A stretch of 64,000 nucleotides of DNA, taken from assembly GCF_000006765.1 (NCBI RefSeq), contig NC_002516.2. One strand, given 5' to 3'. The DNA comes from Pseudomonas aeruginosa PAO1. GTDB taxonomy: Bacteria; Pseudomonadota; Gammaproteobacteria; Pseudomonadales; Pseudomonadaceae. The notes under the pieces were generated by a model. It made no database searches. It worked only from the letters and a program-made list of their open reading frames with translations, and was not told the origin of the DNA. Positions 7,241 to 35,830 of this stretch are shown here, in pieces (the first letter of the stretch is position 1; each line of letters begins with the position of its first letter). The position numbers and the translations under genes were made by a program.

Positions 7241-8029
7241 ATGCGCCCTCTCCTCTTCAGTGCCCTTCTCCTGCTTTCCGGGCATACCCAGGCCAGCGAA
7301 TGGAACGACAGCCAGGCCGTGGACAAGCTATTCGGCGCGGCCGGGGTGAAAGGCACCTTCGTCCTCTACGATGTGCAGCGGCAGCGCTATGTCGGCCATG
7401 ACCGGGAGCGCGCGGAAACCCGCTTCGTTCCCGCTTCCACCTACAAGGTGGCGAACAGCCTGATCGGCTTATCCACAGGGGCGGTTAGATCCGCCGACGA
7501 GGTTCTTCCCTATGGCGGCAAGCCCCAGCGCTTCAAGGCCTGGGAGCACGACATGAGCCTGCGCGACGCGATCAAGGCATCGAACGTACCGGTCTACCAG
7601 GAACTGGCGCGGCGCATCGGCCTGGAGCGGATGCGCGCCAATGTCTCGCGCCTGGGTTACGGCAACGCGGAAATCGGCCAGGTTGTGGATAACTTCTGGT
7701 TGGTGGGACCGCTGAAGATCAGCGCGATGGAACAGACCCGCTTTCTGCTCCGACTGGCGCAGGGAGAATTGCCATTCCCCGCCCCGGTGCAGTCCACCGT
7801 GCGCGCCATGACCCTGCTGGAAAGCGGCCCGGGCTGGGAGCTGCACGGCAAGACCGGCTGGTGCTTCGACTGCACGCCGGAACTCGGCTGGTGGGTGGGC
7901 TGGGTGAAGCGCAACGAGCGGCTCTACGGCTTCGCCCTGAACATCGACATGCCCGGCGGCGAGGCCGACATCGGCAAGCGCGTCGAACTGGGCAAGGCCA
8001 GTCTCAAGGCTCTCGGGATACTGCCCTGA
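7241..8029 (+). CDS. poxB: Class D beta-lactamase, OXA-50 family
   Basis: STYK, SNV, KTG motifs; signal peptide MRPLLFSALLLL; 262 aa from ATG 7241. Confidence 0.97.
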   Translation: MRPLLFSALLLLSGHTQASEWNDSQAVDKLFGAAGVKGTFVLYDVQRQRYVGHDRERAETRFVPASTYKVANSLIGLSTGAVRSADEVLPYGGKPQRFKAWEHDMSLRDAIKASNVPVYQELARRIGLERMRANVSRLGYGNAEIGQVVDNFWLVGPLKISAMEQTRFLLRLAQGELPFPAPVQSTVRAMTLLESGPGWELHGKTGWCFDCTPELGWWVGWVKRNERLYGFALNIDMPGGEADIGKRVELGKASLKALGILP

Positions 8030-8041
8030 CGCTCTGCCGCC

Positions 8042-8449
8042 TCAGTCGCCGACCTTTTTCTGCCGGGACTGCCGCCACTCGTCGAGGCGAATCACCTCGG
8101 CGCTATGCACCGGCGGGTTGTCGACCTCGGCGGCCGCCTCGAAGCGATGCGGGGCCAATTCGATGGCGCCGAGGTGGTAGCCATACATGACGATGCGCCC
8201 GGCGTAGCGTTCCTCGCCGCTGACGGTGAATTCGAAACCGAACTCGCGGCTCAGCCGCCACTGACCACGGTGGTCACGGGCCAGGCGCAGGCGCCGGCGC
8301 GCGACATTCTCGTCGAGCAGTTCCACGCCCTGCTTGGCGCAATGCCGCTTGGCCAGCAGCAACGCCCGCTCGCGCACGCCATGGGCGCGCCACCACCAGG
8401 CTGCGGCGGCGCCCAACAGGAGCATGACGAAAAGGTTACCCAGGGTCAC
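8042..8449 (-). CDS. DUF3301-like membrane-anchored protein
   Basis: N-terminal TM helix, then RERAL...C...GVELLDENV and FEFTVSGEERY; GTG start inferred. Confidence 0.7.
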   Translation of the reverse strand: MTLGNLFVMLLLGAAAAWWWRAHGVRERALLLAKRHCAKQGVELLDENVARRRLRLARDHRGQWRLSREFGFEFTVSGEERYAGRIVMYGYHLGAIELAPHRFEAAAEVDNPPVHSAEVIRLDEWRQSRQKKVGD

Positions 8450-8574
8450 GAGCGGAATCCGGTGTAGGGGGACGGCCAGCTTACCCGTTCTCCCGGCAGG
8501 CAGCGAGTGGGGGGTGTTTTCGCCATGTGAATTAGCCCCCATACTGCGCCGACTCAGCTGTAGGAAGTCGTCTC

Positions 8575-9441
8575 ATGCCACGTACGCCCCACCTGCTCGC
8601 CATCCAGTCCCATGTGGTCTTCGGCCACGCCGGCAATGCCGCGGCGGTGTTCCCGATGCAGCGCATCGGAATCAACGTCTGGCCGTTGAACACGGTGCAA
8701 TTCTCCAACCACACCCAGTACGGTCGATGGACCGGGCAGGTGCTGCCGCCGGAGCAGATTCCGGCGCTGGTGGACGGTATTGCCGGCATCGGCGAACTGG
8801 GCAACTGCGACGCGGTGCTGTCCGGCTATCTCGGCAGCGCCGCCCAGGGCCGCGCCATTCTCGATGTGGTGGCACGGATCAAACAGGCCAACCCTCGGGC
8901 GTTGTACCTCTGCGACCCGGTCATGGGCCACCCGGAAAAAGGCTGCATCGTGGCCCCGGAGGTCAGCGACTTCCTTCTGGAAGAAGCCGCCGCGGTCGCC
9001 GACTACCTGTGCCCCAACCAGTTGGAGCTGGACAGCTTCTGCGACCGCCAGCCGAACTCCCTCGCCGACTGCGTGGAAATGGCACGGAGCCTGCTGGCAC
9101 GCGGTCCCAGGGCAATCCTGGTAAAGCACCTGAACTATCCGGGCAAGGCCGGCGACACCTTCGAGATGCTGCTGGTGGCCGCCGATCAGGCCTGGCACCT
9201 GCAACGCCCGCTGCTGGCCTTCCCGCGGCAACCGGTCGGAGTCGGCGACCTGGCCTCGGGGCTGTTCCTCTCTCGCCTGCTGCTCGGCGACGACCTGCGT
9301 AACGCCTTCGAATTCACCGGCGCCGCGGTCCATGAAGTGCTGCTGGAAACCCAGGCCTGCGGCAGCTACGAGCTGGAACTGGTGCGGGCGCAGGATCGGA
9401 TCGCACACCCAAGGGTTCGTTTCGACGCAGTGCGCCTTTAG
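8575..9441 (+). CDS. pdxY: Pyridoxal kinase
   Basis: [20 protein letters not shown] ribokinase-family motifs. Confidence 0.95.
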
Positions 9442-9478
9442 TCTCCGCCCCTGTGGGTGAAAATCATCCACAGGCGGC

Positions 9479-10063
9479 TCAAAGAACGTATTTCCCCAAC
9501 ATCAACCCACCGACCACCATCACCGCCATCAGCACGAAAGCCATGCCCAGACGCCGCTCTATCAGGGTCTTCAGGCGTGGGCCAGCCCAGAACAGCAAAG
9601 CGCAGGTAGCGGCGAAGCGCAGGCTGCGGGCGACAAGGCTGAGGCCGACGAACAGCCAGAGGTCGAGCTGGGTCACTCCGCTGGTAATGGTGATCACCTT
9701 GTACGGCAGCGGCGTGAAGCCGCCGCCCAGCAGCACCATCAGCCAGCCCAGTTCGTTGTAGCGTTCGGCGACCTGTTCGAAGTTCTCCAGCAAGCCGTAG
9801 AACGCCAGGATCGGCATGGCCACGCTCTCGAACAGCAGCAAGCCGATGAAATAGCCGGCGATGCCGCCCAGCACCGAGCTGATCGCGCAGATCGCCGCGT
9901 AGCGCCAGGCCTTGGCCCGGTTGGCCAGGACCATCGGCACCAGCAAGGCGTCCGGCGGAATCGGGAAGAACGAGCTTTCGGCAAAGGTCACCCCGCCCAG
10001 GGCCAGCTCCGCGCGGGGATGGCCGGCCAGGCGCAGGGTCCAGTCGTAGAGACGGCGCAACAT
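9479..10063 (-). CDS. YqaA/DedA family membrane protein
   Basis: ESSFFPIPPD and FTPLPYKV motifs; start MLRRLYD. Confidence 0.88.
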   Translation of the reverse strand: MLRRLYDWTLRLAGHPRAELALGGVTFAESSFFPIPPDALLVPMVLANRAKAWRYAAICAISSVLGGIAGYFIGLLLFESVAMPILAFYGLLENFEQVAERYNELGWLMVLLGGGFTPLPYKVITITSGVTQLDLWLFVGLSLVARSLRFAATCALLFWAGPRLKTLIERRLGMAFVLMAVMVVGGLMLGKYVL

Positions 10064-10064
10064 G

Positions 10065-12789: not shown

Positions 12790-13533
12790 ATGCCTGCCGC
12801 CATACGCATCCTTCTCCTGGCCCTGGCCGTGCTTGCCGGCATCGGTGCCGCTGCCATCCAGGCCGAGGATACGCCCTGCGCCACCGCCGCGGAATGCAAC
12901 ACGCGCGGCACCCAGGCTTATCGACAGGGGAGTTATCCACAGGCGCTGGACGCCTTCGCCTGGCAATTGCGCCTGGCCGAGCGCCAGGAACAGGGCGGAG
13001 CCGACTCGGAACAGGCGCTGAACAATCTCGCGCTGACCAGCCTCAAGGCCGGGCAACCGGGACGCGCCCGCGCCTGGATGAACCTGGCGCTGGATCGCGG
13101 CTACAGCGGCAAGGCCACGCGCTACAACCTGGAACAGGTTGCCCTGAAAGTCGACTATCCGTCCCTCCAGGGCCTCGCCGGGCACTACCTGCGCTACGCC
13201 GGGCAGGCCGAATGGGAAAGCCTGCAGATCGAACCGGTGAAGGGCGGCTACCAGGCGAGCTTCGCCCTGATGCGCATCGGCAATCCGGAGAAACTGATGG
13301 AATATGGGCCCGCGGCGGTCGGCGAGTTGTCCGGTCGGCTGGAGGGGCAAGGCGCGCTCTACCGGCTGCGCAGCGAAGGCCTGGGCGCCGGCTGCAGCCT
13401 GCTGGTATGGCAGGAAGGCATCGACCTGCGAGTGGTGGAGAGCCTTGGCGGGGACTGCCAGGGTTACGGCGGCATGGGCATCGCCGCCGCCGGTAACTGG
13501 GTGAAGATATCCAGTCAGGCCAGGGACGACTGA
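12790..13533 (+). CDS. Secreted TPR-like hypothetical protein
   Basis: Signal peptide; helical repeats GTQAYRQGSYPQA and ALNNLALTSLKAG. Confidence 0.7.
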   Translation: MPAAIRILLLALAVLAGIGAAAIQAEDTPCATAAECNTRGTQAYRQGSYPQALDAFAWQLRLAERQEQGGADSEQALNNLALTSLKAGQPGRARAWMNLALDRGYSGKATRYNLEQVALKVDYPSLQGLAGHYLRYAGQAEWESLQIEPVKGGYQASFALMRIGNPEKLMEYGPAAVGELSGRLEGQGALYRLRSEGLGAGCSLLVWQEGIDLRVVESLGGDCQGYGGMGIAAAGNWVKISSQARDD

Positions 13534-13580: not shown

Positions 13581-14339
13581 TCAGCGGCCAGCGGACAGGC
13601 CGAAGTCCACCGCCAGGTCGGCGCCCGTGATCGCTTCGGCCTGAGGGCCGCAGAGATACCAGACCAGCTCGGCGACTTCTTCCGGGCGGATGAAGCGTGC
13701 CGCCTTGCCCTGTGGATAATCCTTCAGCAGCGCGCGCTTGTAGCCATCCGGATTGCCCATCCCATAGCGTTCGGCCTGGTAGTCGAGCATCGGCGTGGCG
13801 ATATCCGCCGGCGACACGGCGTTGACCCGCACGCCCTGCTCGGCCAGTTCCAGCGCCAGGGTCTTGCTCAGCATGGTAAGCGCCGCCTTGCTCGCGCAAT
13901 ACGCCGCCGAACCCCGGTAGGCCTGGCGTCCGGAGTCGCTGGAGATGTTGACGATGCTGCCCTGGTTTTCCTTCAGGTAGGGAATCGCGGCCTGGCACAT
14001 GTAGAAGGAGGCCTTGAGGTTGACTCCCAGGACCAGGTCGAAATCCTCCTCGGTGAAGTTTTCCACAGGCCCCTCGCGCCAGACGCCCGCGGCATTCACC
14101 AGGGCGTCGAGACGTCCGGTACGGGCGAGAATCTTCGACATCAGGGTATGGCAGTTATCCGCGCTGCGCAGGTCGGCGACCCCGCTGGCGTCCAACGGCA
14201 CCTGCGCGTTCAGCGCGTGCAGGCCCTCCTTATCCACATCCGTGGCGGCGATGCGCCAATGACTCTGGGCGAAACGCTTGGCGATTGCCCGGCCCAAGCC
14301 GCCGGCTGCACCAGTGATAAGAACGACGGGCGTGCTCAT
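13581..14339 (-). CDS. Short-chain dehydrogenase/reductase
   Basis: TGAAGGLG, NAAG, YCASK. Confidence 0.92.
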   Translation of the reverse strand: MSTPVVLITGAAGGLGRAIAKRFAQSHWRIAATDVDKEGLHALNAQVPLDASGVADLRSADNCHTLMSKILARTGRLDALVNAAGVWREGPVENFTEEDFDLVLGVNLKASFYMCQAAIPYLKENQGSIVNISSDSGRQAYRGSAAYCASKAALTMLSKTLALELAEQGVRVNAVSPADIATPMLDYQAERYGMGNPDGYKRALLKDYPQGKAARFIRPEEVAELVWYLCGPQAEAITGADLAVDFGLSAGR

Positions 14340-14433
14340 CTGCTTTTCCTTACTCCTGTGCCGCGTGGAAAACACCGACGGCCAATCGGCCGCCCGCTTC
14401 AATGACTGACCGGCAACGCCGGCAGCCGTTCAT

Positions 14434-15801
14434 TCAGGCCTGGTTGAGATACCAGCGCCAGTCCTGCTCGCCGACCTCGCCCATGAAGGCACGGTATTCG
14501 GCCTGCTTGATCGCCAGGTAGATCTTCAGGAAATCCTCGCCGAGCGCCTCGCGCGCCCAGGCCGAGCCCTCCAGCGCGCGCAGCGCGGTCAGCCAGTCGC
14601 TCGGCAACGCCTGGGTGGCTTGAGCGTAGCCGTTGCCAGTGATCGGCGCACCGGGGTCGAGTCGCTCGCGAATACCCAGGCGCACCGCCGCGAGCAACGC
14701 CGCCGCCGCCAGGTAGGGATTGGCGTCGGCGCCGCAGATGCGGTGCTCGATGTGCCGGCTGGACGCCGGGCCGCCGGGAACCCGCAGCGACACGGTGCGG
14801 TTGTTGATTCCCCAGGTCGGCGCCAGCGGCGCGTAGCTGTTCGCCTGGAAGCGGCGGAACGAGTTGGCGTTCGGACAGAACAGCGCCAAAGACTCCAGCA
14901 GGCACGCCTTCATTCCACCGATGGCCTGGCGCAGCAGCGGGGTCCCGGCCGGGTCCTCGCTGGCGAACAGATTGTTGCCAGCGGCGTCGGCCAGGCTGAC
15001 GTGCAGGTGCAGGCCGCTGCCGGAAAGATCGGCGAACGGCTTGGCCATGAAGCAGGCCTGCAACCCATGGCGATTCGCCACGCCCTTGACCAGGCGCTTG
15101 TAGCGCACGCCTTCGTCGATCGCCTGGAGCGTGTCGAAGCGATGCTGCAGGGTAATTTCCACCTGCCCCGGCGCGTACTCCGAAATCGCCGTGCGCGCCG
15201 GCAGGCCCTGGGCCTCGCAGGCGGCATACAAGTCATCGAGGAATGGCTGCAACTGCTCCAGCTCGTAGACGCCATAGACCTGGGTCGCCCGCGGCCGCTG
15301 GCCATTCATCTGTAACGCCGGCAACGGCCGGCCGTCGCTGTCGCGTTCGCGGTCGAGCAGGTAGAACTCCAGCTCCACCGCCATCACCGGGTGGAAACCC
15401 TCCGCCTGCAGGCTGTGGATAACCCGCTGCAACACATGCCGGGGATCGCCCGCCGCGGCCGGTAGCCCGAGCTCGGGATGCATGCTTACCTGCACCTGGC
15501 CGGTCGGTGACTGCCGCCAGGGTTGCAGGGTCAGGCTGCCGGGCAGCGGGAAGGTCCAGCAATCGGCATCGCCGACGTCCCAGACCAGGCCGGTCTCCTC
15601 GACGTCATCGCCATTGATGGTCAGGCCGAGGATGGTGCTCGGCAGCGGCCGCCCGCTTTCGTAGACCGCCAGCAGCTCGTCGCGATGCAGCAGCTTGCCG
15701 CGCGGCACGCCGTTGGCGTCGATCAGGAACAGCTCGATGCTGCGCACCTCGGGGTGTGCGGCGAGGAACTCGCGGGCTTCCCGCGGATCGGCGAAATGCA
15801 T
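14434..15801 (-). CDS. pauA6: Gamma-glutamyl-amine ligase (GS family)
   Basis: DANGVPRGK, ELEFYL, EYAPGQVE, GSGLHLHVS, HIEHRICGADANPYL. Confidence 0.88.
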   Translation of the reverse strand: MHFADPREAREFLAAHPEVRSIELFLIDANGVPRGKLLHRDELLAVYESGRPLPSTILGLTINGDDVEETGLVWDVGDADCWTFPLPGSLTLQPWRQSPTGQVQVSMHPELGLPAAAGDPRHVLQRVIHSLQAEGFHPVMAVELEFYLLDRERDSDGRPLPALQMNGQRPRATQVYGVYELEQLQPFLDDLYAACEAQGLPARTAISEYAPGQVEITLQHRFDTLQAIDEGVRYKRLVKGVANRHGLQACFMAKPFADLSGSGLHLHVSLADAAGNNLFASEDPAGTPLLRQAIGGMKACLLESLALFCPNANSFRRFQANSYAPLAPTWGINNRTVSLRVPGGPASSRHIEHRICGADANPYLAAAALLAAVRLGIRERLDPGAPITGNGYAQATQALPSDWLTALRALEGSAWAREALGEDFLKIYLAIKQAEYRAFMGEVGEQDWRWYLNQA

Positions 15802-15802
15802 C

Positions 15803-17197
15803 TCAGGCCTCCCGCGCGCCGGGTATGGCGAGCAGCTCGCCGAGCGCCTCGTCGAGGCTGGAGAGCAGGCGGTCGACATCTTCTTCGCGAGTGTCCGGGC
15901 AACACAGGGTCATGTTGTGGAACGGCGTGATGAGGATGCCGCGGTTGATCAGATACAGGTGCAAGGCCATCTGCAGGCTGTCGTGGAACGCCGCCTCGGC
16001 GGCCGCGCCGTCGCGTGGGGGTTGCGGGCAGAACTGGAACTCGCTGCGCGCGCCGAGCTCGGTCACCGACCAGGCCAGGCCGTGCTTGTGGATAATCCTG
16101 CGGAAGCCCTCGGCCAGACGCGCCGCCAGGGGCAGCATGTGGGCGTAGGCGGTATCGGTCATCACCTCTTCCAGGTTGGCGCGCATACAGCGCATCGCCA
16201 GGGCGTTGGCCGACAGCGTGGTACCCATGCCGCTGTGGCCGTGGCCTTCGCTCTGCTCGCTGGCACGTGCCCTGGCCAGTTGCATGGCGCTGGCCATCGC
16301 CGCGCTGCAACCATACACCGAGCACGGTACGCCGCCGGCGATCGGCTTGCCGAGGGTGATGAAGTCCGGCTCGAGCTTCCAGGCGCGGGTACAGCCGCCA
16401 GGACCTGTGGAGATGGTGTGGGTCTCGTCGATGATCAGCAGCGTGCCGTGACGACGGGTCAGCTCGCGTAGCTTCTGGTGGAAGCCGGGTTGCGGCAGGA
16501 CCATGCCGATGTTGGTCATCGCCGGCTCGCAGAGCACGGCGGCCACGTCTTCGCCGGCCAGCGCCCGCTCCAGGGCCTGGAGGTCGTTGAACGGCACCGC
16601 GCGGCTGAACTGGGTGAGGTCGTGGGCCTGGCCGAGCAGGCCGGAGCGATGCACGGTGCGGCCGTCGCGGCAGCGAACCAGGGTGTCGTCGACCGTGCCG
16701 TGGTAGCAACCGTCGAATACCAGCACCACCTTGCGACCGGTGATCGCACGCGCCCAGCGCAGGACGAAGCGGTTGGCGTCGGTAGCGGTGGTCGCTACCT
16801 GCCAGAACGGCAGGCCGAAGCGCTGCGCCAGCAACTCGCCTGCGACGATGGCATCCTCCCCCGGAAGCATGGTGGTCAGGCCGTTCGCGCCCTGCTCGGC
16901 GAGCGCCCGGGCGATCGGCGCCGGAGAATGGCCGAACATGCTGCCGGTATCGCCCAGGCAGAAGTCCACGTAGGCGTGGCCGTCCACATCATGGAAACGC
17001 GCGCCGTGGGCACGCGCCACGAACAGCGGACAGGGTGTTGACCAATCGCTCATCCAGTGCATCGGTACGCCGTCGAACAAGGCGCGCCGGGCTCGCTCGG
17101 CGAGCGCGACGGACTGTGGATTCTGCGCAAGGAAACGTTGCTGCTCGCGGGCCATGAAGGTTTCCACGGCGGCTTCGGCGATGCCACTGGCGGTCAT
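15803..17197 (-). CDS. Class III PLP aminotransferase
   Basis: DFCLGDTG, IIDETHT, TLGKPIAGG (PLP lysine); GAGGTG RBS before ATG 17197. Confidence 0.9.
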   Translation of the reverse strand: MTASGIAEAAVETFMAREQQRFLAQNPQSVALAERARRALFDGVPMHWMSDWSTPCPLFVARAHGARFHDVDGHAYVDFCLGDTGSMFGHSPAPIARALAEQGANGLTTMLPGEDAIVAGELLAQRFGLPFWQVATTATDANRFVLRWARAITGRKVVLVFDGCYHGTVDDTLVRCRDGRTVHRSGLLGQAHDLTQFSRAVPFNDLQALERALAGEDVAAVLCEPAMTNIGMVLPQPGFHQKLRELTRRHGTLLIIDETHTISTGPGGCTRAWKLEPDFITLGKPIAGGVPCSVYGCSAAMASAMQLARARASEQSEGHGHSGMGTTLSANALAMRCMRANLEEVMTDTAYAHMLPLAARLAEGFRRIIHKHGLAWSVTELGARSEFQFCPQPPRDGAAAEAAFHDSLQMALHLYLINRGILITPFHNMTLCCPDTREEDVDRLLSSLDEALGELLAIPGAREA

Positions 17198-17233
17198 TTC
17201 GAACACCTCGTTTTTTATTTCGCACAACTTTCA

Positions 17234-18095: not shown

Positions 18096-18099
18096 ACAT

Positions 18100-19884: not shown

Positions 19885-20739
19885 TCAGTTCTGCCGGATA
19901 CCGGCCACCAGCCATGGCTGGTTCTCGCCCTGGGCGCGCTCCATCCGCCAGCTTTCGCTGAAGGCTTCGCCCTGGTCGAAGCGCGAGGTCTTCGACACAC
20001 CGCTGAAGGTCAGGGTGGCGATGGTCTTGTCGGCCTGGTCGTCGACGCCGTCCAGTTGCACGACCAGGTTGTCGATGTAGGTGGACTGGTAGGCGTCGCC
20101 GATCTCGGCGCGCTCCTGCTTCAGCCATTGCAACATCTGCGGGGTGACGAACTCGGCGATCTTGTCCATCTCGTTGGCATCCCAATGCTGCTGCAGGGAC
20201 ATGAAGTGTTCGCGAGCGGCACCGACGAAGCGCTCCTCGTTGAACCAGCTCGGCGCGTTGATCACCGGGCTCGGCGCAGCGGCAGCAGCGGCGGCGCCAC
20301 CGAAGATCGGCGCCTGGGCCGGCATTTCGCGCTGCATCGGCGCGTGCCCGGCCATCGCAGGCTGGCCCTGGTTCTGCTGGCGCCGGCGAGCGGCGATGAA
20401 GCGGAAGGCGATGAAGGCCACCAGGGCGATCAACAGGATGTCGAGCATCTGGATGCCCTCGAAGCCGTCGCCCATGAACATGGAAGCGAGCAGGCCGCCC
20501 GCGGCGATACCGGCCAGCGGGCCGAGCCAGCGCGAAGCACCGCTGGCGGCAGCGGCGGGACGAGCGGCGTTGGGGGCGGCAGCAGTGGCGTTCGGCGCAG
20601 TGGCCGGCTGCGCCTGGCGGGTCTGGTGGCTGGGTGCCGAGCCGAGGCTCTTGCCGCCGCCGAAGCGCTTGGCATTGGCATCCAGGCTGACGGTCAGCGC
20701 CAGGCAGAAGGCGAGGGCGATGCTGAGAACACGCTGCAT
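19885..20739 (-). CDS. Tim44-domain membrane protein
   Basis: Signal peptide, KRFGGGKSLG, Ala-rich linker, TM pair, C-terminal Tim44-like domain (FSESWRMER). Confidence 0.85.
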   Translation of the reverse strand: MQRVLSIALAFCLALTVSLDANAKRFGGGKSLGSAPSHQTRQAQPATAPNATAAAPNAARPAAAASGASRWLGPLAGIAAGGLLASMFMGDGFEGIQMLDILLIALVAFIAFRFIAARRRQQNQGQPAMAGHAPMQREMPAQAPIFGGAAAAAAAPSPVINAPSWFNEERFVGAAREHFMSLQQHWDANEMDKIAEFVTPQMLQWLKQERAEIGDAYQSTYIDNLVVQLDGVDDQADKTIATLTFSGVSKTSRFDQGEAFSESWRMERAQGENQPWLVAGIRQN

Positions 20740-21100
20740 TGTAGTCTTTCTCTCTTGGGGGAATCGACGCGCGCCATGTTGCGGCGGTACGGGCGACAGG
20801 ACCAGCCGGATTTTGTTTCGGGCTATTGCTCCCCGGCCGCCGTTTTTTCGCCCGCCGCGTCTGGCTCGCGGGTCGGCGCCAGGGTACACCTTCGTTGCCG
20901 GGGACGACAGGCATGCACGCGGATCGGCGCGCGAAGATCCGCCCGGCGACCCGGGAAGCACAACGCAGAGCCTCGCCGAAACGTCTGTTACAGTTTTTTT
21001 CAGCCCACCGATCAAGCACTTGCGGATGCTAGTCTGCGGGTCTGCGAGGCCGCCCGGTCGCCGCGTCTGCCGACCCATTCCCCGAGCGAGGACCGCCGCC

Positions 21101-22858
21101 ATGCATGCCGTCGATTTCATCCAGGACCTCGCCGTGATCATGCTGGTGGCGGGTGTGGTCACTATCCTCTTCCACCGCCTGCGCCAACCGGTGGTCCTCG
21201 GCTACATCGTCGCCGGCTTCATCATCGGCCCGCACACCCCGCCCTTCGGACTGATCCACGACGAAGACACGATCAAGACCCTGGCCGAACTCGGGGTGAT
21301 CTTCCTGATGTTCTGCCTCGGCCTGGAGTTCAGCCTGCGCAAGCTCTTCCAGGTCGGCGCCACGGCGTTCATCGCGGCGTTCCTGGAAATCGTCCTGATG
21401 ATCTGGATCGGCTTCGAGATCGGTCGCTTCTTCGAGTGGAGCACCATGGACTCGCTGTTCCTCGGCGCGATCCTGGCGATCTCCTCCACCACCATCATCG
21501 TCAAGGCGCTCGGCGACCTGAAGATGAAGAACGAGCGCTTCGCCCAACTGATCTTCGGCGTGCTGATCGTCGAGGACATCCTCGGCATCGGCATCATCGC
21601 CCTGCTGTCGGGAATCGCCGTGAGCGGTTCGGTGGAAACCGGCGAGGTGTTCTCCACGGTCGGCAAGCTCAGCCTGTTCATGATCGTCGCGCTGGTCGTC
21701 GGCATCCTCCTGGTGCCACGCCTGCTGGCCTACGTGGCGAAGTTCGAGAGCAACGAGATGCTGCTGGTCACCGTGCTCGGCCTGTGCTTCGGCTTCTGCC
21801 TGCTGGTGGTGAAGCTGGAATACAGCATGGTGCTCGGCGCCTTCCTGATCGGCGCGATCATGGCCGAGTCGCGCCAGTTGGTGCAGATCGAACGATTGAT
21901 CGAGCCGGTCCGTGACATGTTCAGTGCGATCTTCTTCGTCGCCATCGGCCTGCTGATCGACCCGAAGATCCTCGTCGAGTACGCCTGGCCGATCGCCCTG
22001 ATCACCGTCGCGGTAGTGCTCGGCAAGATGTTCTCCTGCGGCATGGGTGCGTTCATCGCCGGCAACGACGGACGCACTTCGCTGCGGGTCGGCATGGGCC
22101 TGTCGCAGATCGGCGAGTTCTCCTTCATCATCGCCGCCCTGGGCATGACTCTGAAAGTCACCAGCGACTTCCTCTACCCGGTGGCGGTAGCGGTCTCGGC
22201 CATCACCACCCTGCTCACCCCGTACCTGATCCGCGCCGCCGACCCGCTCTCGCAGCACCTGGCCAACGCCATGCCGCAGCGCATGGCGAGGATCTTCGGC
22301 CACTACGGCGACTGGCTGCGAAGCATCCAGCCGCAGGGCGACCGTGCGGTGCTGGCGGCGATGATCCGGCGCATCTTGCTGCAGGTCGGGGTGAACCTGG
22401 CGCTGGTGATCGCGATCTTCCTCGCCGGCGGTTATTTCGCCGATACGCTTTCCGCCTGGATGAGCCAGTGGGTCGCCTACGACGGGCTACACAAGGCATT
22501 GATCTGGGGCGGCGCGCTGCTGGTCTCGCTGGCCTTCCTGATCGCCGCGTACCGCAAGCTCAAGGCCCTGTCGATGCTGCTGGCCGAACTCGGGGTCAAG
22601 CCGGAGAAAGCCGGACGCCATACGGCGCGGGTACGTCGGGTGATCTCCGAGATAATCCCGCTGCTGTCGCTGGCCGGCATGATGGTGCTGCTGGCGGCGC
22701 TCAGCTCGAGCATCCTGCCGCCGGGCGAGTTGCTGGTCGTAGTGGTGCTGGTCGCCGGCCTGGTGATCGCAGTGCTCTGGCGCTGGCTGATCCGCGTGCA
22801 TTCGCGGATGCAGATCGCGCTGATGGAAACCCTCGACCAGGAAAAGGGCAGCCACTGA
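21101..22858 (+). CDS. CPA2 sodium/proton antiporter
   Basis: LAELGVIFLMFCLGLEF, SQIGEFSFII; start MHAVDF. Confidence 0.88.
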   Translation: MHAVDFIQDLAVIMLVAGVVTILFHRLRQPVVLGYIVAGFIIGPHTPPFGLIHDEDTIKTLAELGVIFLMFCLGLEFSLRKLFQVGATAFIAAFLEIVLMIWIGFEIGRFFEWSTMDSLFLGAILAISSTTIIVKALGDLKMKNERFAQLIFGVLIVEDILGIGIIALLSGIAVSGSVETGEVFSTVGKLSLFMIVALVVGILLVPRLLAYVAKFESNEMLLVTVLGLCFGFCLLVVKLEYSMVLGAFLIGAIMAESRQLVQIERLIEPVRDMFSAIFFVAIGLLIDPKILVEYAWPIALITVAVVLGKMFSCGMGAFIAGNDGRTSLRVGMGLSQIGEFSFIIAALGMTLKVTSDFLYPVAVAVSAITTLLTPYLIRAADPLSQHLANAMPQRMARIFGHYGDWLRSIQPQGDRAVLAAMIRRILLQVGVNLALVIAIFLAGGYFADTLSAWMSQWVAYDGLHKALIWGGALLVSLAFLIAAYRKLKALSMLLAELGVKPEKAGRHTARVRRVISEIIPLLSLAGMMVLLAALSSSILPPGELLVVVVLVAGLVIAVLWRWLIRVHSRMQIALMETLDQEKGSH

Positions 22859-22918: not shown

Positions 22919-23066
22919 CTCGCCTGCACCTGGTGTCGCTATCGGACCCTTTGCCCTGAAGGATCGGCGGATTTCCGCTTATCCACACTCCCGGTCGGCG
23001 GACTCCCGCTCGGCCAAGACCACCCCGCTCCTCTTCCAACCCAGTCCCCACGCGGCTTTCCCGCGT

Positions 23067-24481: not shown

Positions 24482-24529
24482 TTGAGCCTCGTGCTCACGG
24501 CCCCGACACACTCCGGGCCTTTTTATCCA

Positions 24530-24565
24530 CAGGACGGCGACCTTCGGGTCGCCGTCCTGCTTTTT
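24530..24565 (+). terminator. Strong intrinsic terminator (13-bp stem, UUCG loop), preceded by a weaker one at about 24499-24524
   Basis: CAGGACGGCGACC-TTCG-GGTCGCCGTCCTG-CTTTTT. Confidence 0.75.
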
Positions 24566-26017: not shown

Positions 26018-26979
26018 TCATTCCGCGACCATCCGACACGCCAGGAACGCCTCTTCGAGCGCCTCTTCATCCGCGCCTGCGGCGAGGATCAGTTCCAGCC
26101 GATTATCCCGCCGCCACGAGGACTTGCCCCAGTTATCCACAAACGGCGCGGCATTCGCTGCATACCAACCGTCCGCGCAATGCAGCACCGCCTTGGCTCG
26201 CCGCAGTCCGGACAGACGGTTCAGCCAGGCGTCCACTGCGGCCCGATCGAAACGCACCGACGGCGCCAGCCGATGGCGAACTGGCCGTCCTGCTCGCGCA
26301 CGGCGCGCAGCGGTCGCTCGGCAAGCAGCACCGTTCCCAACTGAGCAGGCGCCTCCGGCAGGGCCGCCCAGGTCGTCGCGCTACCTTCCCCGGCAACGCT
26401 GGTCGGCAGATCGCGCAATGCCAGGTGACCGCGCACGCTCCAGCGCAACGGCAGGACCGGCAGGCGCGCACGCACGGCGCAGCGCTGCGTCGCGTCGAGC
26501 GTTTCGGATTTGTTCAGCAGCAACATGCCGGCCGCTTCCAGCGCCTGTTCCTGTGCCTCCGGCAGCGGTTGGCCGGAGGCCAGCGCGGCGGCATCCAGCA
26601 CCACTACCAGGGGTTGCAGGGCCAGGACGCCGGACCAGGGAGGAGCCTGCAGCTGTTTCCACAGCGCCTGCGGATGTCCCAACCCGGATGGTTCGATGAA
26701 CAGCCGGTCCGGCCGTGCCCGACGCAACAAGCGACCGAGCCCCACCTGGAACGGCACGCCATTGACGCAGCAGAGGCACCCGCCCGCCACCTCGCCGATG
26801 GCCACGCCGTCGACGTCCGTGGCCAGCAGCGCGGCATCCAGGCCGATCTCGCCGAACTCGTTGACCAGCACCGCCCAGCGCTCGCCCGCCGGCTTCTGCG
26901 CCAGCAGCGAGCGGATCAGGCTGGTCTTGCCGGCCCCCAGGGGGCCGCCGATCAGGTGTGTGGGTATCTCTCGAAGCAT
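26018..26979 (-). pseudogene. COG0523/CobW-family GTPase split by a frameshift near 26262-26266
   Basis: GPLGAGKT, GCLCC, EPSG in the 26221-26979 ORF; C-domain (RAKAVLH...NRLELI) continues in another frame 26018-26257; total 962 bp. Confidence 0.75.
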
Positions 26980-27602: not shown

Positions 27603-28244
27603 TCAGGCAAGCCAGTCCAGGGTCAACAGCAGGCGCGCCAGCCCAGGCTCCGCTCGCGGCGAGCGATGCACCAGCCCGGCACCTTCGTTACCCTCCCAGC
27701 GTTCGCCCTTGAGCAGCGCCACGTCGCCCGTGGACAAGCTGTGGATAAGCTGTTCGTCGACAACTTCGGCCTGCGCTCCGCCAAGCAGCCGACGGTCCAG
27801 GCCGGACTCGTCCAGCCATTCGCTGGCGGCGCCCTGGTAGGTGGTGACCAGCCGCAGCGGCACGTGGTCGACGTGGAAACGCGGGCACATCGGTTTATCC
27901 AGAACGCGCAGGCGCAGGCCGATACGCCGCGCCCCGGTCAGGCAGGAGAAGGCCTCGACCAGCCAGCCCAGGTCGTCGAGGAAATCGGTTTGTCCCGGCA
28001 GTTGCTGCGCGTCGAGCAGGCCGTCCAAGACGGGTAGCCGTTCCTCTTCCATCTCCAGCGTCTGGCTCAGCGCCAGTCCCGGCCGGTTGCGCACCAGGGC
28101 GGCGGCGAAGTCGCGCAGCGCCGGGCTCAACCGGCGTGTCCAGACCGCCAGGTTGACGCCCTCGCGAAGCACCTCGGCCAGCACCTGGGGGTCGTCATCG
28201 AACGCCTGGCGCGGCAACGGTTTTTCCTGCGGCAGTGCGCTCAT
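27603..28244 (-). CDS. DUF1826 family protein
   Basis: [32 protein letters not shown]. Confidence 0.85.
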
Positions 28245-30391: not shown

Positions 30392-31562
30392 GCGCCGCCA
30401 GGTAGCTGCCGGCGGGAGGGCGTTGCCGGAAGTAGCCCTGCACGCCAGCGAAGATCGCCTCGGCCAGGCGCTGGCGATGGCGTTCGTCCATCAACCGGCG
30501 ACAATCGCCGCGATTCGAGATGAAGCCGGTCTCCACCAGGATCGAAGGGATGTCCGGCGACTTGAGCACGGCGAAGCCGGCCTGCTCGACACGCTTCTGG
30601 TGCAGCGCGGTGACGTCCGACAACTGGCCGAGAACGCTGTGGCCGAGGTCCAGGCTGCTGGCGATGGTCGAACTCAGGGCCATGTCGAGGATCACCCCGG
30701 CGAGTACCTTGTCGCGGCCCTGTAGCGGCAGGTTGCCGCTGTTGCCGATCAGGTCGGCGCCGTTCTCGCGCTCGGCCATCCAGCGCGCCATGGTCGAGCT
30801 GGCGCCATGCTCGGAGAGGGCATATACCGACGCGCCGGAGGCGGTCAGTCGCGGCGCCGCGTCGGCGTGCACCGAAACGAACATGTCGGCGTTGTAGCGC
30901 CGGGCCACTTCCGGCCGCTTGCGCAGCGGGACGAACACATCGCCGTTGCGCACCAGGCGCGCCTTGAAGCCTTTCTCACGGTCGATCCGCCGCGCCAGCA
31001 GGCGGGCGATGGCCAGCGCCACGTCCTTTTCGCGCTCGCCCTTGCTACCGACCGCGCCGGGGTCCTTGCCGCCATGGCCGGCATCGACCACCACGAGGAT
31101 GTCGCGGCCCGTCGAGGGTAGCGGGCGGGCCAGCGCCAGCATTGGCTCGGGGGGCGCCGCCAGCGCCTGTGGATATAGGTCCAGGACCAGGCGATGGCCC
31201 TTTCCCGCCTGCGGTTCCAGGGCGAAGCTGCGCGGCCTGACCGCTTGGCGCAGATCGAGGACGATGCGCGTCCCGCCGCCACCCAGTTGGCCACTGCGTA
31301 TGGCGCGCACGGGGCCGTCCAGCGGTAGCTCGGAGAGCGTTGCGAGCAATTGCGCGTCGGGCAGGTCGAGGATCAACCGCTCGGGGGCCTGCAGGGAAAA
31401 GGTTCGATAACGCGGCGGGCCGTCCAGTTCCAGCACCAGGCGCCAGCTTTCCGAGGAATTCCAGGCCCGGGCCTGGCGGATTCGTACATTGGCGCTGGCG
31501 GCTAGGAACGGCTGGAGGGCCAGGCCGGCGAGCAGGCTTTGCAGGAGACGACGGCGCTTCAT
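30369..31562 (-). CDS. amiA: N-acetylmuramoyl-L-alanine amidase (AMIN + Amidase_3)
   Basis: Arg-rich signal, DAGHGGKDPG, EKDVAL, SVHAD, LVETGFISN. Confidence 0.93.
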   Translation of the reverse strand: MKRRRLLQSLLAGLALQPFLAASANVRIRQARAWNSSESWRLVLELDGPPRYRTFSLQAPERLILDLPDAQLLATLSELPLDGPVRAIRSGQLGGGGTRIVLDLRQAVRPRSFALEPQAGKGHRLVLDLYPQALAAPPEPMLALARPLPSTGRDILVVVDAGHGGKDPGAVGSKGEREKDVALAIARLLARRIDREKGFKARLVRNGDVFVPLRKRPEVARRYNADMFVSVHADAAPRLTASGASVYALSEHGASSTMARWMAERENGADLIGNSGNLPLQGRDKVLAGVILDMALSSTIASSLDLGHSVLGQLSDVTALHQKRVEQAGFAVLKSPDIPSILVETGFISNRGDCRRLMDERHRQRLAEAIFAGVQGYFRQRPPAGSYLAALSAQPPG

Positions 31563-31602
31563 CGACGAAATACCCGATTGCAAGGGTCGGCATTAGCTAA
31601 TA

Positions 31603-31617
31603 CGTTATATTATAACA
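31603..31617. promoter_or_regulatory. Zur box
   Basis: CGTTATATTATAACA between divergent amiA and folE2. Confidence 0.88.
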
Positions 31618-31661
31618 TTCAAGCCATTTCCAGGCCTTGCCTACCCTTCTTCGAGTTCTCC

Positions 31662-32558
31662 ATGAATGCCTTGACGCTTCCCGATATCGCCCGCCAGACC
31701 ACCACCGCCGATCTTCCCCTGGACTGGGTCGGCATGCAGGGCATCGCCCTTCCCGTGCAGATCGGCGGGCAGAGGGTCGCCGCCGAAGCCGATGCCGGTG
31801 TCAGCCTGGACGACCCGCAGGCCCGCGGCATCCATATGTCGCGCCTCTACCTGGCGCTGGCCGAACTGGAACAGGGCGAGCTGGACCTTTCCTGCCTGCG
31901 CGCCGTCCTGCAACGCTTCCTCGACAGCCACGCCGGCCTGTCGCGTCGCGCCTACCTGCGCCTACGCCTCGCGCCGCTGCTGCGGCGTCCGGCGCTGGTC
32001 AGCCCGCTGAGCGGCTGGAAACGTTATCCACTGGTGCTGGACACGCGCCTGGAAGGCGATGACTTCCAGGCCGAAGTCCATCTCGAGCTGACCTACTCCT
32101 CGACCTGCCCCTGTTCGGCGGCACTGGCCCGGCAATTGATCCAGGAGCGCTTCGACCAGGACTTCGCCGGACAGCCGCTCGATCATGCCAGCGTGCTCGC
32201 CTGGCTCGGCAGCAGCGCCGGCATCGTCGCCACCCCGCACAGCCAGCGCAGCAGCGCGCACCTGCGCATCGGCCTGGCGGAAGACTGCATCGGACTGCCC
32301 CTGGAAGAGCTGGCGGATCTCGGCGAAAGCGCCCTCGGCACCGCGGTGCAGACTGCGGTGAAACGCGCCGACGAGCAGGCCTTCGCCCTCGCCAACGGGC
32401 AGAACCTGATGTTCTGCGAGGACGCGGTGCGCCGGCTGCACCGCGCCCTGCAGGGTTATCCACAGGCGAGCCGGTTCTCCATACGGGTCGTCCATGCGGA
32501 AAGCCTGCATGCCCATGACGCCGTCGCCGAAAGCCATTGGCAGCGAGGTGCAGCATGA
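31662..32558 (+). CDS. folE2: GTP cyclohydrolase IB
   Basis: GIHMSRL, YSSTCPCS, ESLHAHDA. Confidence 0.93.
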   Translation: MNALTLPDIARQTTTADLPLDWVGMQGIALPVQIGGQRVAAEADAGVSLDDPQARGIHMSRLYLALAELEQGELDLSCLRAVLQRFLDSHAGLSRRAYLRLRLAPLLRRPALVSPLSGWKRYPLVLDTRLEGDDFQAEVHLELTYSSTCPCSAALARQLIQERFDQDFAGQPLDHASVLAWLGSSAGIVATPHSQRSSAHLRIGLAEDCIGLPLEELADLGESALGTAVQTAVKRADEQAFALANGQNLMFCEDAVRRLHRALQGYPQASRFSIRVVHAESLHAHDAVAESHWQRGAA

Positions 32559-33115
32559 TCCGCAAGAATCCCTCCGGCGACCTGCCGGTGATCGACGAAT
32601 CGGCCTATGTGGACAAGACCGCGATCATCTGCGGCAAGGTGATCATCCAGGCCAACGTCTTCGTCGGTCCCTACGCAGTGATCCGTGCCGACGAAGTCGA
32701 CGCCGACGGCGGCATGCAACCGATCGTGATCGGCGCCAACTCGAACATCCAGGACGGCGTGGTGATCCATTCCAAGTCGGGTGCCGCGGTGACCATCGGC
32801 GAGCACAGCTCCATCGCCCACCGCTCCATCGTCCACGGTCCTTGCGAAGTCGGCGACCGGGTCTTCATCGGCTTCAACAGCGTGCTGTTCAACTGCCGGG
32901 TCGGCGATGGCTGCGTGGTCCGCCACAACGCGGTGGTCGACGGCTGCGACCTGCCAGCGGGTTTCTACGTACCGTCCACCGAGCGCATCGGTCCGCGCAC
33001 CGACCTGGCGAGCATGCCGCGGGTCAGCGTTTCCGCCAGCGAGTTCTCGGAAGACGTGGCGCGCACCAACGTCGACCTGGTACGCGGCTACAAGTCGCTG
33101 CAGAACGAGTTCTGA
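32555..33115 (+). CDS. Gamma-class carbonic anhydrase (hexapeptide repeat)
   Basis: VIRADE, NIQDGVVIH, HRSIVHGPC. Confidence 0.88.
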   Translation: MIRKNPSGDLPVIDESAYVDKTAIICGKVIIQANVFVGPYAVIRADEVDADGGMQPIVIGANSNIQDGVVIHSKSGAAVTIGEHSSIAHRSIVHGPCEVGDRVFIGFNSVLFNCRVGDGCVVRHNAVVDGCDLPAGFYVPSTERIGPRTDLASMPRVSVSASEFSEDVARTNVDLVRGYKSLQNEF

Positions 33116-33117
33116 AC

Positions 33118-34455
33118 ATGCAAAGCCTGCTGATCCGCAATGCCCGGATGGTCAACGAGGGGCAGGTACGCGAAGGCGATCTGCTGGTCCGCCACGGTCG
33201 CATCGAACGCATCGCCGGCTGCCTGGAAAACTGCGGCGCCAGCCGGGAGATCGATGCCGCCGGACGCTACCTGCTGCCGGGAATGATCGACGACCAGGTG
33301 CACTTCCGCGAGCCGGGTTATCCACAGAAGGGCTCGATCGCCAGCGAATCCCGCGCCGCCGTGGCGGGCGGCATCACCAGTTTCATGGACATGCCCAATA
33401 CCCGCCCGGCGACGCTGAGCCTCGAAGCGCTGGCGGAAAAGAAGCGCCTCGCCGCCGCCCATAGCGTGGCCAACTACGGTTTCCACTTCGGCGTCAGCCG
33501 CGACAACCTCGACACCGTGGCCGCCCTCGATCCACGCGAGGTCGCCGCGGTGAAGGTGTTCATGGGCGCCTCCACCGGCGACATGCTGGTGGACGACCTG
33601 CCGACCCTGGAGCGCCTGTTCGCCAGCGTTCCGACCCTGCTGCTGAGCCATTGCGAAGACACGCCGCGGATCGAAGCCAACCTGGCGCGCTGGCGACAAC
33701 GCTTCGGTGAACGTATTCCGGCAGCCGCCCACCCGCGCATTCGCGACGCCGAGGCTTGCTACCGTTCCACCGCCCTGGCGGTGGAACTGGCGCAACGACA
33801 TGGCACGCTGCTGCATGTCCTGCACTTATCCACAGCGCGTGAACTGGCCCTGTTCGAGGACAAGCCGCTGTGCCAGAAACGCATCACCGCGGAAGTCTGC
33901 GTCCACCATCTGCTGTTCGACGACAGCGACTACGCCCGCCTCGGCCATCTGCTCAAGTGCAACCCGGCGATCAAGAGCCGCGAGGACCGCGACGCCCTGC
34001 GCAGGGCGCTGGCCGGCAACCGCCTGGACGTGATCGGCACCGACCACGCGCCGCACGCCTGGGCCGAGAAGCAGCAGGCTTATCCACAGGCGCCGGCCGG
34101 CCTGCCACTGGTCCAGCATGCGTTGCCGGCACTCCTGGAGCTGGTCCGCGAAGGCTGGCTGTCGCTGGCCACCCTGGTGGCGAAGACCAGCCACCGGGTC
34201 GCCGAACTGTTCGCCATCGCCGATCGCGGTTTCCTCCGCGAAGGTTACTGGGCCGACCTGGTGCTGGTCAGCGAACTGGAGCACCCGGCGCTGGCCAGCG
34301 CCATGCCGCTGCTGTCGCGCTGCAACTGGACGCCGTTCCGCCACCGGGCATTCCACCATCGGATCGATACCACCATCGTCTCCGGGCAACTCGCCTGGCA
34401 CGCGGGACGCCTGTCCGACGATTGCCAGGGACTGCCCCTGCGGTTTTCCCGCTGA
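33118..34455 (+). CDS. pyrQ: Dihydroorotase paralog
   Basis: IDDQVHFREPG, DMPNT, KCNPAI, TDHAPH. Confidence 0.9.
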   Translation: MQSLLIRNARMVNEGQVREGDLLVRHGRIERIAGCLENCGASREIDAAGRYLLPGMIDDQVHFREPGYPQKGSIASESRAAVAGGITSFMDMPNTRPATLSLEALAEKKRLAAAHSVANYGFHFGVSRDNLDTVAALDPREVAAVKVFMGASTGDMLVDDLPTLERLFASVPTLLLSHCEDTPRIEANLARWRQRFGERIPAAAHPRIRDAEACYRSTALAVELAQRHGTLLHVLHLSTARELALFEDKPLCQKRITAEVCVHHLLFDDSDYARLGHLLKCNPAIKSREDRDALRRALAGNRLDVIGTDHAPHAWAEKQQAYPQAPAGLPLVQHALPALLELVREGWLSLATLVAKTSHRVAELFAIADRGFLREGYWADLVLVSELEHPALASAMPLLSRCNWTPFRHRAFHHRIDTTIVSGQLAWHAGRLSDDCQGLPLRFSR

Positions 34456-34499
34456 AGTCTTGTCCACAGCCTGCTGTGGATATCCGTTCGCCCACGGCC

Positions 34500-35744
34500 C
34501 TAGCGCAGGGCTTTCACCGCCGCGCCAAGGAAGGCATAGGTCTCCTCCTCGCGATCGTCCATCTCCGGCTTCGGCCAGGCGCTCCAGACCACCGCCACGA
34601 TCTTCTCCTTGCGGTTGATGTAGAGGTACTGGCCGAAGATGCCCTGGGCTTCGAAGGCCCCGCCGTCATGCTCGGGCAGGGCCTTGGCGCCCACCGGGAA
34701 GGTCCACCACTGGTAGCCGTAGCCGAGCGCGTATTCGCCATCGTAGAGCTTGCCCGGGGCCAGGTGGGAAGAAGCCTCGACGCGACTGGCACGATCGACC
34801 CAACCTTCGGGGAGGATACGTTCGCCATCGATCACCCCGTCCTCGAGGACGAACTGGCCGAAGCGGCCATAGTCGCGCAGGGTCGCGCTCAAGCCGCTGC
34901 TGCCGATCTCTTGCCCGGCCGGCGATTCCAGTTGCCAGAAGCCGTCGCTCTCCATGCCCATTCGCGCCCAGATCCGCTCGGACAGGTAGTCGCTCACCGG
35001 AATGCGGGTCGCCGCGTGCAGCAGCTCGCTCTGCAGGTGCGACTCGCCGGTGCTGTAGGTGAAGTGGGTACCGCTCGGGTACTGCCGCGGCAGGCTCGCC
35101 AGCAGCCGCAGGATGCCACCGGGACGTTCGGCGAGCTGGGCGTCGAACATCTGCCGGCGGTCGGACTTCGGATCGCGATAGGTCTCGTTCCAGCGGACCC
35201 CGGAACTCATCTGCAGGACCTGCTCCACCGTCACCCCCTGGTAGGCGGAGCCGGCCAGGCTCGGCAGGTACTTGTCCACAGGCTGGTCGAGAGCCAGCAG
35301 GCCCTGCTGCACGGCGGCGCCCACCAGGGTCGAGGAGATCGACTTGACCACCGAGAACGAGGTCCAGCGCGTCCGTTCGTCGTTGCCCAGGCCGTAGCGC
35401 TCCAGGGCGACCTTGCCATCCTTGAGGATCAGCACGCCGCCAACGCGGTTGCGCCGCATGAAATCGTCGACGCCGTATTCCTCGCCGCCGATCCGGTAGC
35501 GCGGCGCGATGGCCACACCCGCCGGCAGCGGACGGACCTTGGTCCCCTTGTGGATAACCCGGGTCGGATAGACCTTGTCCATGTTCCGGTAGGTGTCCGG
35601 CTGGTATTCCGGGATCAGTTCATAGAGATCGGCGGCACGGCCGATCCGCGGGTTTTCCACAGCCGCGTCGGCGCCGGCCGAGCCGCTTGCCGAGACGAAC
35701 AGTGCCAGCAGGGCCGGCCGGAAGACTGATATACAGCTACGCAT
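34500..35744 (-). CDS. Serine hydrolase, beta-lactamase fold (PA5542/PIB-1-like)
   Basis: Signal peptide, SVVK (SxxK), FTYST, YGYQWW, AQGIFGQ. Confidence 0.85.
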   Translation of the reverse strand: MRSCISVFRPALLALFVSASGSAGADAAVENPRIGRAADLYELIPEYQPDTYRNMDKVYPTRVIHKGTKVRPLPAGVAIAPRYRIGGEEYGVDDFMRRNRVGGVLILKDGKVALERYGLGNDERTRWTSFSVVKSISSTLVGAAVQQGLLALDQPVDKYLPSLAGSAYQGVTVEQVLQMSSGVRWNETYRDPKSDRRQMFDAQLAERPGGILRLLASLPRQYPSGTHFTYSTGESHLQSELLHAATRIPVSDYLSERIWARMGMESDGFWQLESPAGQEIGSSGLSATLRDYGRFGQFVLEDGVIDGERILPEGWVDRASRVEASSHLAPGKLYDGEYALGYGYQWWTFPVGAKALPEHDGGAFEAQGIFGQYLYINRKEKIVAVVWSAWPKPEMDDREEETYAFLGAAVKALR

Positions 35745-35830
35745 GGACGTTTTCCTTATGACCGGAAGCAGCTCCGGCTTCGTCGTTTTTATGGATGTGG
35801 ACTGGCGTCGCAGTGTTATCCACAGGACGT

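Follow-up and report, generated by a model that had tools for sequence, protein, structure and literature searches.

A one-armed field of solitary DnaA boxes beside the replication origin of Pseudomonas aeruginosa and its possible role in titrating the initiator

Titration of the initiator DnaA by sites scattered along the chromosome has been debated as a timer of replication since 1991, and direct support for it in Escherichia coli came only in 2025. In that organism the titration signal is hidden among hundreds of chance boxes and overlaps SeqA, datA and DARS. The E. coli titration boxes are single consensus sites in ordinary sequence that are over-represented, densest near the origin and copied early, and that are presumed to accept ATP-DnaA and ADP-DnaA alike (PMC12371093); their origin-proximal enrichment and titration by them have now been shown (Olivi et al. 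2025, PMC12371093). Here, a 64-kb stretch of the Pseudomonas aeruginosa PAO1 chromosome (“the window”), which spans mifS/mifR-like two-component genes through yidC/rnpA according to Pfam scans and the gene calls of public contigs, is found to belong to a field of DnaA boxes of the same general kind. The field differs from its E. coli counterpart in lying on one arm only, in consisting almost solely of the perfect 9-mer TTATCCACA, and in standing out from a GC-rich background close to zero, with about one-third of the consensus boxes in less than 2% of the genome. The origin-proximal excess in E. coli is modest by comparison (about 2 standard deviations over hundreds of chance boxes), but it is there that an effect of titration has been measured.

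Other described systems share some of these properties. Near-origin extra boxes also occur in the form of the DnaA-box clusters (DBCs) of Bacillus subtilis (PMC3245932) and a cluster in Streptomyces coelicolor, organisms likewise without SeqA, where a location-dependent restraint on initiation has been proposed; deletion of the B. subtilis clusters causes early initiation, again in a manner that depends on location (Okumura et al. 2012, PMC3245932). The DBCs are compact, intergenic, many-box arrays with stable DnaA complexes, however, whereas the P. aeruginosa boxes are solitary and mostly intragenic. The datA, DARS1 and DARS2 loci of E. coli are non-origin DnaA-binding DNA whose position relative to oriC matters, but they are compact, have a fixed box geometry and sites for IHF or Fis, and catalyze ATP hydrolysis or nucleotide exchange on DnaA oligomers. 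We know of no datA or DARS in P. aeruginosa. Closest in position is oriCII (or oriC2), upstream of gidA, which is reportedly also treated by Jiang et al. 2006 and in a preprint by Weigel from 2025. This element lies in the same window (59.2-60.4 kb) and shares the 9-mer, and DnaA binds to it in vitro (Wawrzyniak et al. 2026, PMC13438810), but its boxes are packed into one intergenic region and it shows origin-like and promoter-regulating activity, whereas the boxes of primary concern here are dispersed, intragenic and 24-52 kb further from oriC1, the rpmH-dnaA origin.

An exact-word count on both strands yields 23 perfect copies of TTATCCACA in the window, 17 of them in 7469-35824 and 6 in 57600-61152, with none in 1-7468 or 35825-57599. 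A preliminary description of this DNA had reported the same 17 and 23 boxes, and the recount recovers its coordinates; its zero-order expectation of about 0.1 perfect copies per window agrees with the mean of 0.12 (maximum 1) from 100 dinucleotide-preserving shuffles. One-mismatch copies number a further 28 where 3.3 are expected; 14 of these lie within 7469-35824, a span for which about 12 near-consensus copies had been estimated and in which all of those listed are present. Thirty boxes in the window match TTWTNCACA. Synonymous-codon shuffling inside each gene (300 runs) gives 0.77 coding boxes (maximum 4) against 19 observed, so that the claim of an excess far beyond chance also holds against a codon-aware background. 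Under an order-3 Markov model the same word is the top over-represented 9-mer in the window (23 versus 0.09, z=76), and the runners-up are shifts and close variants of it. The presence of the boxes far above chance is thereby confirmed against both composition and coding nulls. With corrected gene models, 14 of the 17 boxes in 7469-35824 still fall inside coding sequences, as first described, the three intergenic ones being those at 22979, 24523 and 35816. The sequence is natural, because a PAO1-type chromosome (CP047067.1; 6,264,417 bp) shows 100% identity in a 20.6-kb comparison and has an identical box set, and nine other P. aeruginosa strains retain most boxes.

The edges of the field were traced along public P. 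aeruginosa contigs that extend beyond the window on either side. Only 404 bp separate the right end of the window from the end of the CP047067.1 record, just short of oriC1. To its left, perfect boxes continue at window-equivalent positions -2970, -6134, -16023, -17139, -20859, -28139 and -28157, beyond which no perfect box occurs over 17.8 kb, to -45962. On the right arm, 36.6 kb beyond oriC1, from dnaA to past aroE, contain neither a perfect box nor any TTWTNCACA match, although about 12 boxes would be found there at the density of the left arm. In the flanks sampled, the whole field thus amounts to about 30 perfect boxes across about 92 kb, all of them to the left of oriC1, where rnpA lies. 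The 28-kb unit of the preliminary description is therefore merely the densest part, with about 0.6 perfect boxes per kb, and its limits are no real boundaries; the origin-proximal location is borne out by the walk to oriC1, for one arm. The field also continues into the oriCII cluster known from earlier work: the six boxes at 57.6-61.2 kb are those of oriCII itself and of gidA and trmE on either side of it.

The remainder of the chromosome can be judged from published figures. The PAO1161 genome has 129 TTWTNCACA boxes, described as “enriched on the left arm” (PMC13438810, a 2026 paper). About 44 of these 129 lie within the roughly 110 kb covered here (window, left extension and oriC1), which leaves about 85, near the approximately 72 expected by chance for 6.15 Mb. 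An equal density of boxes chromosome-wide, which would have told against an origin-proximal field, is thus not what these numbers indicate. All four parS sites that were found (TGTTCCACGTGGAACA, 0-1 mismatch) belong to the right arm, no more than about 15 kb from dnaA, with none in the window, so that the DnaA-box field on the left and the parS sites on the right appear to divide the origin region between them. Within the field, the interval 35825-57599 forms a box-free gap of 22 kb that holds TRAP transporter genes, glmS, glmU, the atp operon, parB, parA and gidB, and the boxes may avoid highly expressed or essential genes. As a stand-in for expression level, GC3 proved unreliable in this genome.

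How so many copies of a 9-mer can be accommodated in protein-coding DNA is apparent from their placement. The host genes are functionally unrelated, and the intragenic boxes occur anywhere along a gene, in every reading frame and in both orientations. In the window they are read as TTA TCC ACA (Leu-Ser-Thr, LST; 3 boxes), as TAT CCA CAG (YPQ; 5 boxes), as nTT ATC CAC A (x-I-H; 7 boxes) and, in the opposite orientation, as GTG GAT AAn (VDN or VDK; 4 boxes). The 14:4 excess of the sense-strand orientation relative to the host gene arises largely because the antisense orientation gives a stop codon in one frame. These readings employ the codons TTA, CCA, ATA and GAT, the first three of which are very rare; TTA accounts for only 10 of the 2374 leucine codons in the window, and 3 of those 10 are within boxes. 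When six boxes were compared with orthologous positions in 39-80 other Pseudomonas species, the closest orthologue was at least 2 mismatches away for five of them and encoded other residues; for the remaining box (26133) a single species matches perfectly, although gaps affect 58 of 67 alignments at that point. The residues at the boxes contrast with those of the orthologues as GYPQ with RSDA or RSPG, GYPQ with GAPD, LST with LTT or LTS, and LIHS with LIQQ. Because all frames are used, very rare codons are employed and orthologues encode different residues, the boxes must have been imposed at the level of the DNA. Their origin lies on the P. aeruginosa branch and involved silent as well as replacement changes, at positions where the proteins vary. 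As the dihydroorotase-like protein has no relative between the P. aeruginosa cluster and about 75% identity, the gains can be dated only to somewhere along that long branch.

Comparisons among strains and lineages indicate considerable turnover. Across ten strains that are about 99.4% identical, 4 of the 10 window boxes in the compared segment vary, as against 12% of random 9-mers. Of the ten strains, the PAO1-type genome alone has the perfect form of the box at 22979, where the other nine read TTATCCACT; conversely, the near-box ATATCCACA at 31168 is perfect in 3 of 10 strains, and the box at 27740 is altered in 4 of 10. At greater distances, putida-group species have 7 or 8 perfect boxes per 21 kb, each with its own set in other genes, and P. 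laurentiana and P. defluvii each have 7 boxes, again in sets of their own. Metapseudomonas boanensis also has 7, of which 5 are in mifS/mifR-like genes whose P. aeruginosa counterparts carry none. These patterns suggest that selection acts on the number of boxes in the region and not on their individual positions. The wider comparison set consisted of at least 80 folE2 loci of other Pseudomonas species, P. aeruginosa being absent from the matches listed.

Several lines of evidence connect the motif with DnaA. The identical 9-mer is found three times in oriC1, and single mismatches are 8-17 fold enriched at box positions 1, 3, 5 and 6 but only 0-1.7 fold at positions 4, 7 and 9, a tolerance that broadly matches the degeneracy expected of DnaA boxes (TTWTNCACA). 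In electrophoretic mobility shift assays, P. aeruginosa DnaA shifts both single-box probes (PMC13729189) and oriCII DNA (PMC13438810). The flanks of the 23 copies have nothing in common except a preference for G after the box, which may stem from a liking of DnaA for that flank or from the codons involved (CAG, AGC). A G follows 13 of the 23 perfect boxes (TTATCCACAG), and all TATCCACAG words, variant boxes included, number 18 copies. The boxes are otherwise solitary, with a spacing of about 0.2-7 kb; only 4 of 23 have a neighbor of at most 2 mismatches within 40 bp, against 2.6 expected, and neither arrays nor paired weak boxes around the perfect ones are found beyond chance. Without compact arrays, this architecture fits sites that each bind a single DnaA monomer. 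With respect to replication, the strands do not differ significantly (11:6 in the field, 16:14 for left-arm boxes), and the lagging-strand preference reported for E. coli boxes is not seen in these counts. The leftmost boxes, at -28139 and -28157, form a same-strand (-) pair 18 bp apart between genes for a sodium:dicarboxylate symporter and an Ivy-like protein, the sole tight pair outside the origins.

Of the described systems, origin-proximal titration sites are the ones that these features resemble most. As in such sites, perfect boxes lie outside the origin (17 in 7469-35824, 30 in the whole field), are over-represented and are origin-proximal. A compact datA-type cluster is not present, the boxes being solitary (IHF sites were not searched for), and no triplet of adjacent boxes in fixed orientation, as in the DARS core, occurs in 7469-35824. 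The likeness to datA and DARS drawn in the preliminary description is therefore a loose one: DnaA-binding DNA outside the origin is common to all, but the compact arrays that define those loci are absent from the field, which can for that reason be expected to provide at most passive DnaA binding. The Bacillus DBCs likewise lie near oriC, but they are clustered and intergenic, whereas here the boxes stand alone and 14 of 17 are within coding sequence. A replication origin within 7469-35824 is not indicated, as the GC content stays at 0.65-0.67 throughout and arrays are lacking. DnaA-regulated promoters are a poor match as well, with 3 of 17 boxes intergenic and the position not kept for 5 of 6 tested intragenic boxes.

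A conserved core becomes visible when the 80 loci from other species are considered, as 140 of their 173 boxes fall in three adjacent genes, namely those for a cobW-like protein, DUF1826 and CobW. The cobW-like gene has two boxes, separated by 212 bp, of which perfect copies occur in 50 and 56 of 77 species, counts that are not independent because the species are related, and conservation at third-codon positions within these two boxes is 0.79-0.92, compared with 0.61 on average. In P. aeruginosa, the box at 26133 lies in the segment of a third, less conserved hotspot box (20 of 77 species), where the alignment is mostly gapped. This compact cluster is a candidate for a genus-wide DnaA control element. 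In about 60 of the 80 loci, from the fluorescens group and others, two or three perfect boxes stand at fixed spacing in the 3' part of the cobW-like gene, in the order of a + box, a - box 37 bp on and a + box 197 bp further (as in locus L001, 5275-5517); the equivalent of the cluster in the window is at about 26.0-26.5 kb. In the window, as in the PAO1-type genome, a frameshift divides the cobW-like (COG0523-family) gene itself (26018-26979, -) into pieces of 252 and 79 aa; the gene is whole in nine other P. aeruginosa strains, with a product of 322 aa.

Selected DnaA binding beside the origin is well supported by these observations, and from it we infer occupancy of the boxes in the cell and an effect on initiation. 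Selection acting on the DNA maintains the left-arm field of P. aeruginosa: boxes are created at tolerant protein positions by synonymous and replacement substitutions, and are lost and regained over time. The simplest and likeliest reading of its function, to which we give an even chance, is that these approximately 30 solitary, perfect, high-affinity boxes form a passive DnaA sink. Each would hold a single DnaA molecule, whether ATP- or ADP-bound. Within the first minutes after initiation the leftward fork would have copied the whole field, doubling the sites beside the new origins, whereupon free DnaA would fall and re-initiation would be delayed until newly made DnaA had refilled the sites. 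Such a sink would work alongside Hda-dependent inactivation in a bacterium without SeqA, which pseudomonads lack (PMC13729189). Modeling shows that titration prevents re-initiation at fast growth only with origin-proximal sites (PMC9640692), and a sink would fit both the architecture and the evolution of the boxes as reconstructed here.

A number of considerations nonetheless weigh against a sink. A literature search for DnaA occupancy or a replication phenotype at these boxes in P. aeruginosa found none. The capacity of the field is small, each copy offering about 30 strong sites and about 20 that are weaker, and Hda is essential in P. aeruginosa (PMC13729189), so that titration cannot be the main brake on initiation. 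In P. fluorescens and P. koreensis, the equivalent origin-proximal locus has only 1-2 boxes in 21 kb, with the same gene cluster 52-100 kb from the end of the chromosome record; a field of this type is therefore not a general requirement. The greater variability of single boxes among strains than of random 9-mers means, in turn, that selection on each single box is weak. Finally, titration alone leaves the restriction to one arm unexplained. This one-sidedness may reflect a right flank packed with conserved housekeeping genes and the ParB/parS domain, and a left flank that may offer conditionally expressed, dispensable genes tolerant of rare codons and changed residues. A narrower form of the proposal, in which a one-armed buffer of about 30 boxes opposite ParB/parS, placed in dispensable or rarely transcribed genes and kept as a total-number trait, partly prevents re-initiation, is put forward tentatively, as less likely than not.

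The sequence signs of selected DnaA binding next to the origin would equally suit a positive role of the field, as an antenna or reservoir that raises local DnaA near oriC1 and oriCII or as an organizer or tether of the origin region, and so aids initiation or positioning. The location of the field opposite the four right-arm parS sites, which suggests a DnaA side and a ParB side, and the one-sidedness in general would fit such a structural role as easily as titration. We regard this as unlikely, however, as extra origin-proximal boxes act negatively in the two systems examined by deletion, B. subtilis (PMC3245932) and, as cited there, Streptomyces; moreover, boxes up to 92 kb away are far for an effect on local concentration, and there are no arrays able to build DnaA filaments. 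A still less probable explanation, suggested in the 2026 oriCII paper (PMC13438810), is that the boxes are separate DnaA operators or roadblocks that tune individual host genes. DnaA does regulate gidAB-parAB through oriCII boxes (PMC13438810), three boxes of the field are intergenic (one of them, at 35816, 72 bp upstream of a gene start), and an intergenic pair with 18-bp spacing occurs further left, but the 14 of 17 boxes within coding sequence occupy any position in the gene in either orientation, their hosts are functionally unrelated and 5 of 6 tested positions are not kept in orthologues, and gene-by-gene regulation does not predict confinement to one chromosomal neighborhood. An origin of the motif in composition, codon usage, a longer repeat or another site unrelated to DnaA, such as the DNA uptake sequences that are likewise short motifs dispersed in genes in both orientations, is highly improbable, because dinucleotide, codon-aware and order-3 Markov nulls all fail by more than 20-fold, the motif is that of the oriC1 boxes with a mismatch tolerance that follows DnaA degeneracy, and its confinement to the left flank of the origin rather than the whole genome, together with unrelated flanks, rules out a longer repeat, a REP element and an uptake sequence.

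The coordinates of the boxes and associated features are collected in Table 1. Some details of the gene models and of the comparison loci bear on this region more generally. A 904-aa open reading frame at 20144-22858 was rejected as a gene in favor of the publicly called 585-aa Na+/H+ exchanger (21101-22858, +), and public gene calls place a Tim44-like gene on the opposite strand at 19885-20739 (-). The mifS/mifR-like genes of the window, at 3104-6210, are box-free; in Metapseudomonas boanensis, 5 perfect boxes fall within 2.6 kb (L052, 1372-4012) in genes for a Cache/HisKA sensor kinase and a sigma-54 response regulator. In the FolE2 scan, no hit exceeded 69% identity among the matches listed.

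Table 1. Perfect DnaA boxes and associated features, in window coordinates except for the parS sites
Feature	Position	Strand	Coding reading and remarks
Densest part of field	7469-35824		17 perfect and 14 one-mismatch DnaA boxes
Box, class-D beta-lactamase-like gene (7241-8029 +)	7469-7477	+	TTA TCC ACA (LST)
Box, same gene	7684-7692	-	GTG GAT AAC (VDN)
Box, TPR protein gene (12790-13533 +)	12933-12941	+	TAT CCA CAG (YPQ); TTATCGACA at 12918, 6 bp upstream
Box, short-chain dehydrogenase gene (13581-14402 -)	13711-13719	-	YPQ
Box, same gene	14230-14238	+	VDK; orientation opposite to 13711 box
Box, glutamine-synthetase-family gene (14434-15879 -)	15414-15422	-	VIHS
Box, class-III aminotransferase gene (15803-17227 -)	16087-16095	-	IIHK
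Box, intergenic, between Na+/H+ exchanger gene (ends 22858) and MFS transporter gene (starts 23174)	22979-22987	+	
Box, intergenic, convergent MFS and tonB genes either side	24523-24531	+	
Box, C-terminal piece of frameshifted cobW-like gene	26133-26141	+	FVDN
Box, DUF1826 gene	27740-27748	-	LIHS; TTGTCCACG (27729) after 2 bp
Box, folE2	32456-32464	+	GYPQ; orthologues RSDA or RSPG
Box, dihydroorotase-like amidohydrolase gene (33118-34455 +)	33318-33326	+	GYPQ; orthologues GAPD
Box, same gene	33826-33834	+	TTA TCC ACA (LST); orthologues LTT/LTS, CTG ACC
Box, same gene	34080-34088	+	AYPQ
Box, serine beta-lactamase-family gene (34500-35744 -)	35549-35557	-	VIHK
Box, intergenic	35816-35824	+	72 bp upstream of serine beta-lactamase-family gene start
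Box, gidA/mnmG (57305-59200 -)	57600-57608	+	AVDN
Box, same gene	58705-58713	-	LIHI
gidA-trmE intergenic region, published oriCII	59201-60389		Perfect boxes at 60018 and 60359; also TTATCAACA x3, TTATGCACA x2, TTTTCCACA x1
Box, trmE/mnmE (60390-61778 -)	60518-60526	-	LIHN
Box, same gene	61152-61160	-	TTA TCC ACA (LST)
parS sites, right-arm contig L099	2844, 4205, 14106, 14736		

DnaA-box enrichment of this kind is already known, and its occurrence on the left arm was noted in a supplementary figure of the 2026 paper (PMC13438810). The present analysis adds how large the excess is, the evidence that the boxes were written into the DNA itself, where the field ends and that it keeps to one arm, the fact that its boxes are solitary, how they turn over among strains and lineages, and the conserved core in the cobW-like gene. 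The findings also raise the questions of why only one arm is used and why related species differ so much. P. aeruginosa, being GC-rich, has almost no chance boxes, nearly all of its selected boxes lie in one stretch of non-essential genes, and the signal of selection, visible in rare codons and altered residues, is unusually plain, so that the number, position and arm of the sites can be directly manipulated. If the sink proposal is true, the organism would offer a nearly background-free system for the initiator titration model and for the theory that origin-proximal sites alone make titration robust.

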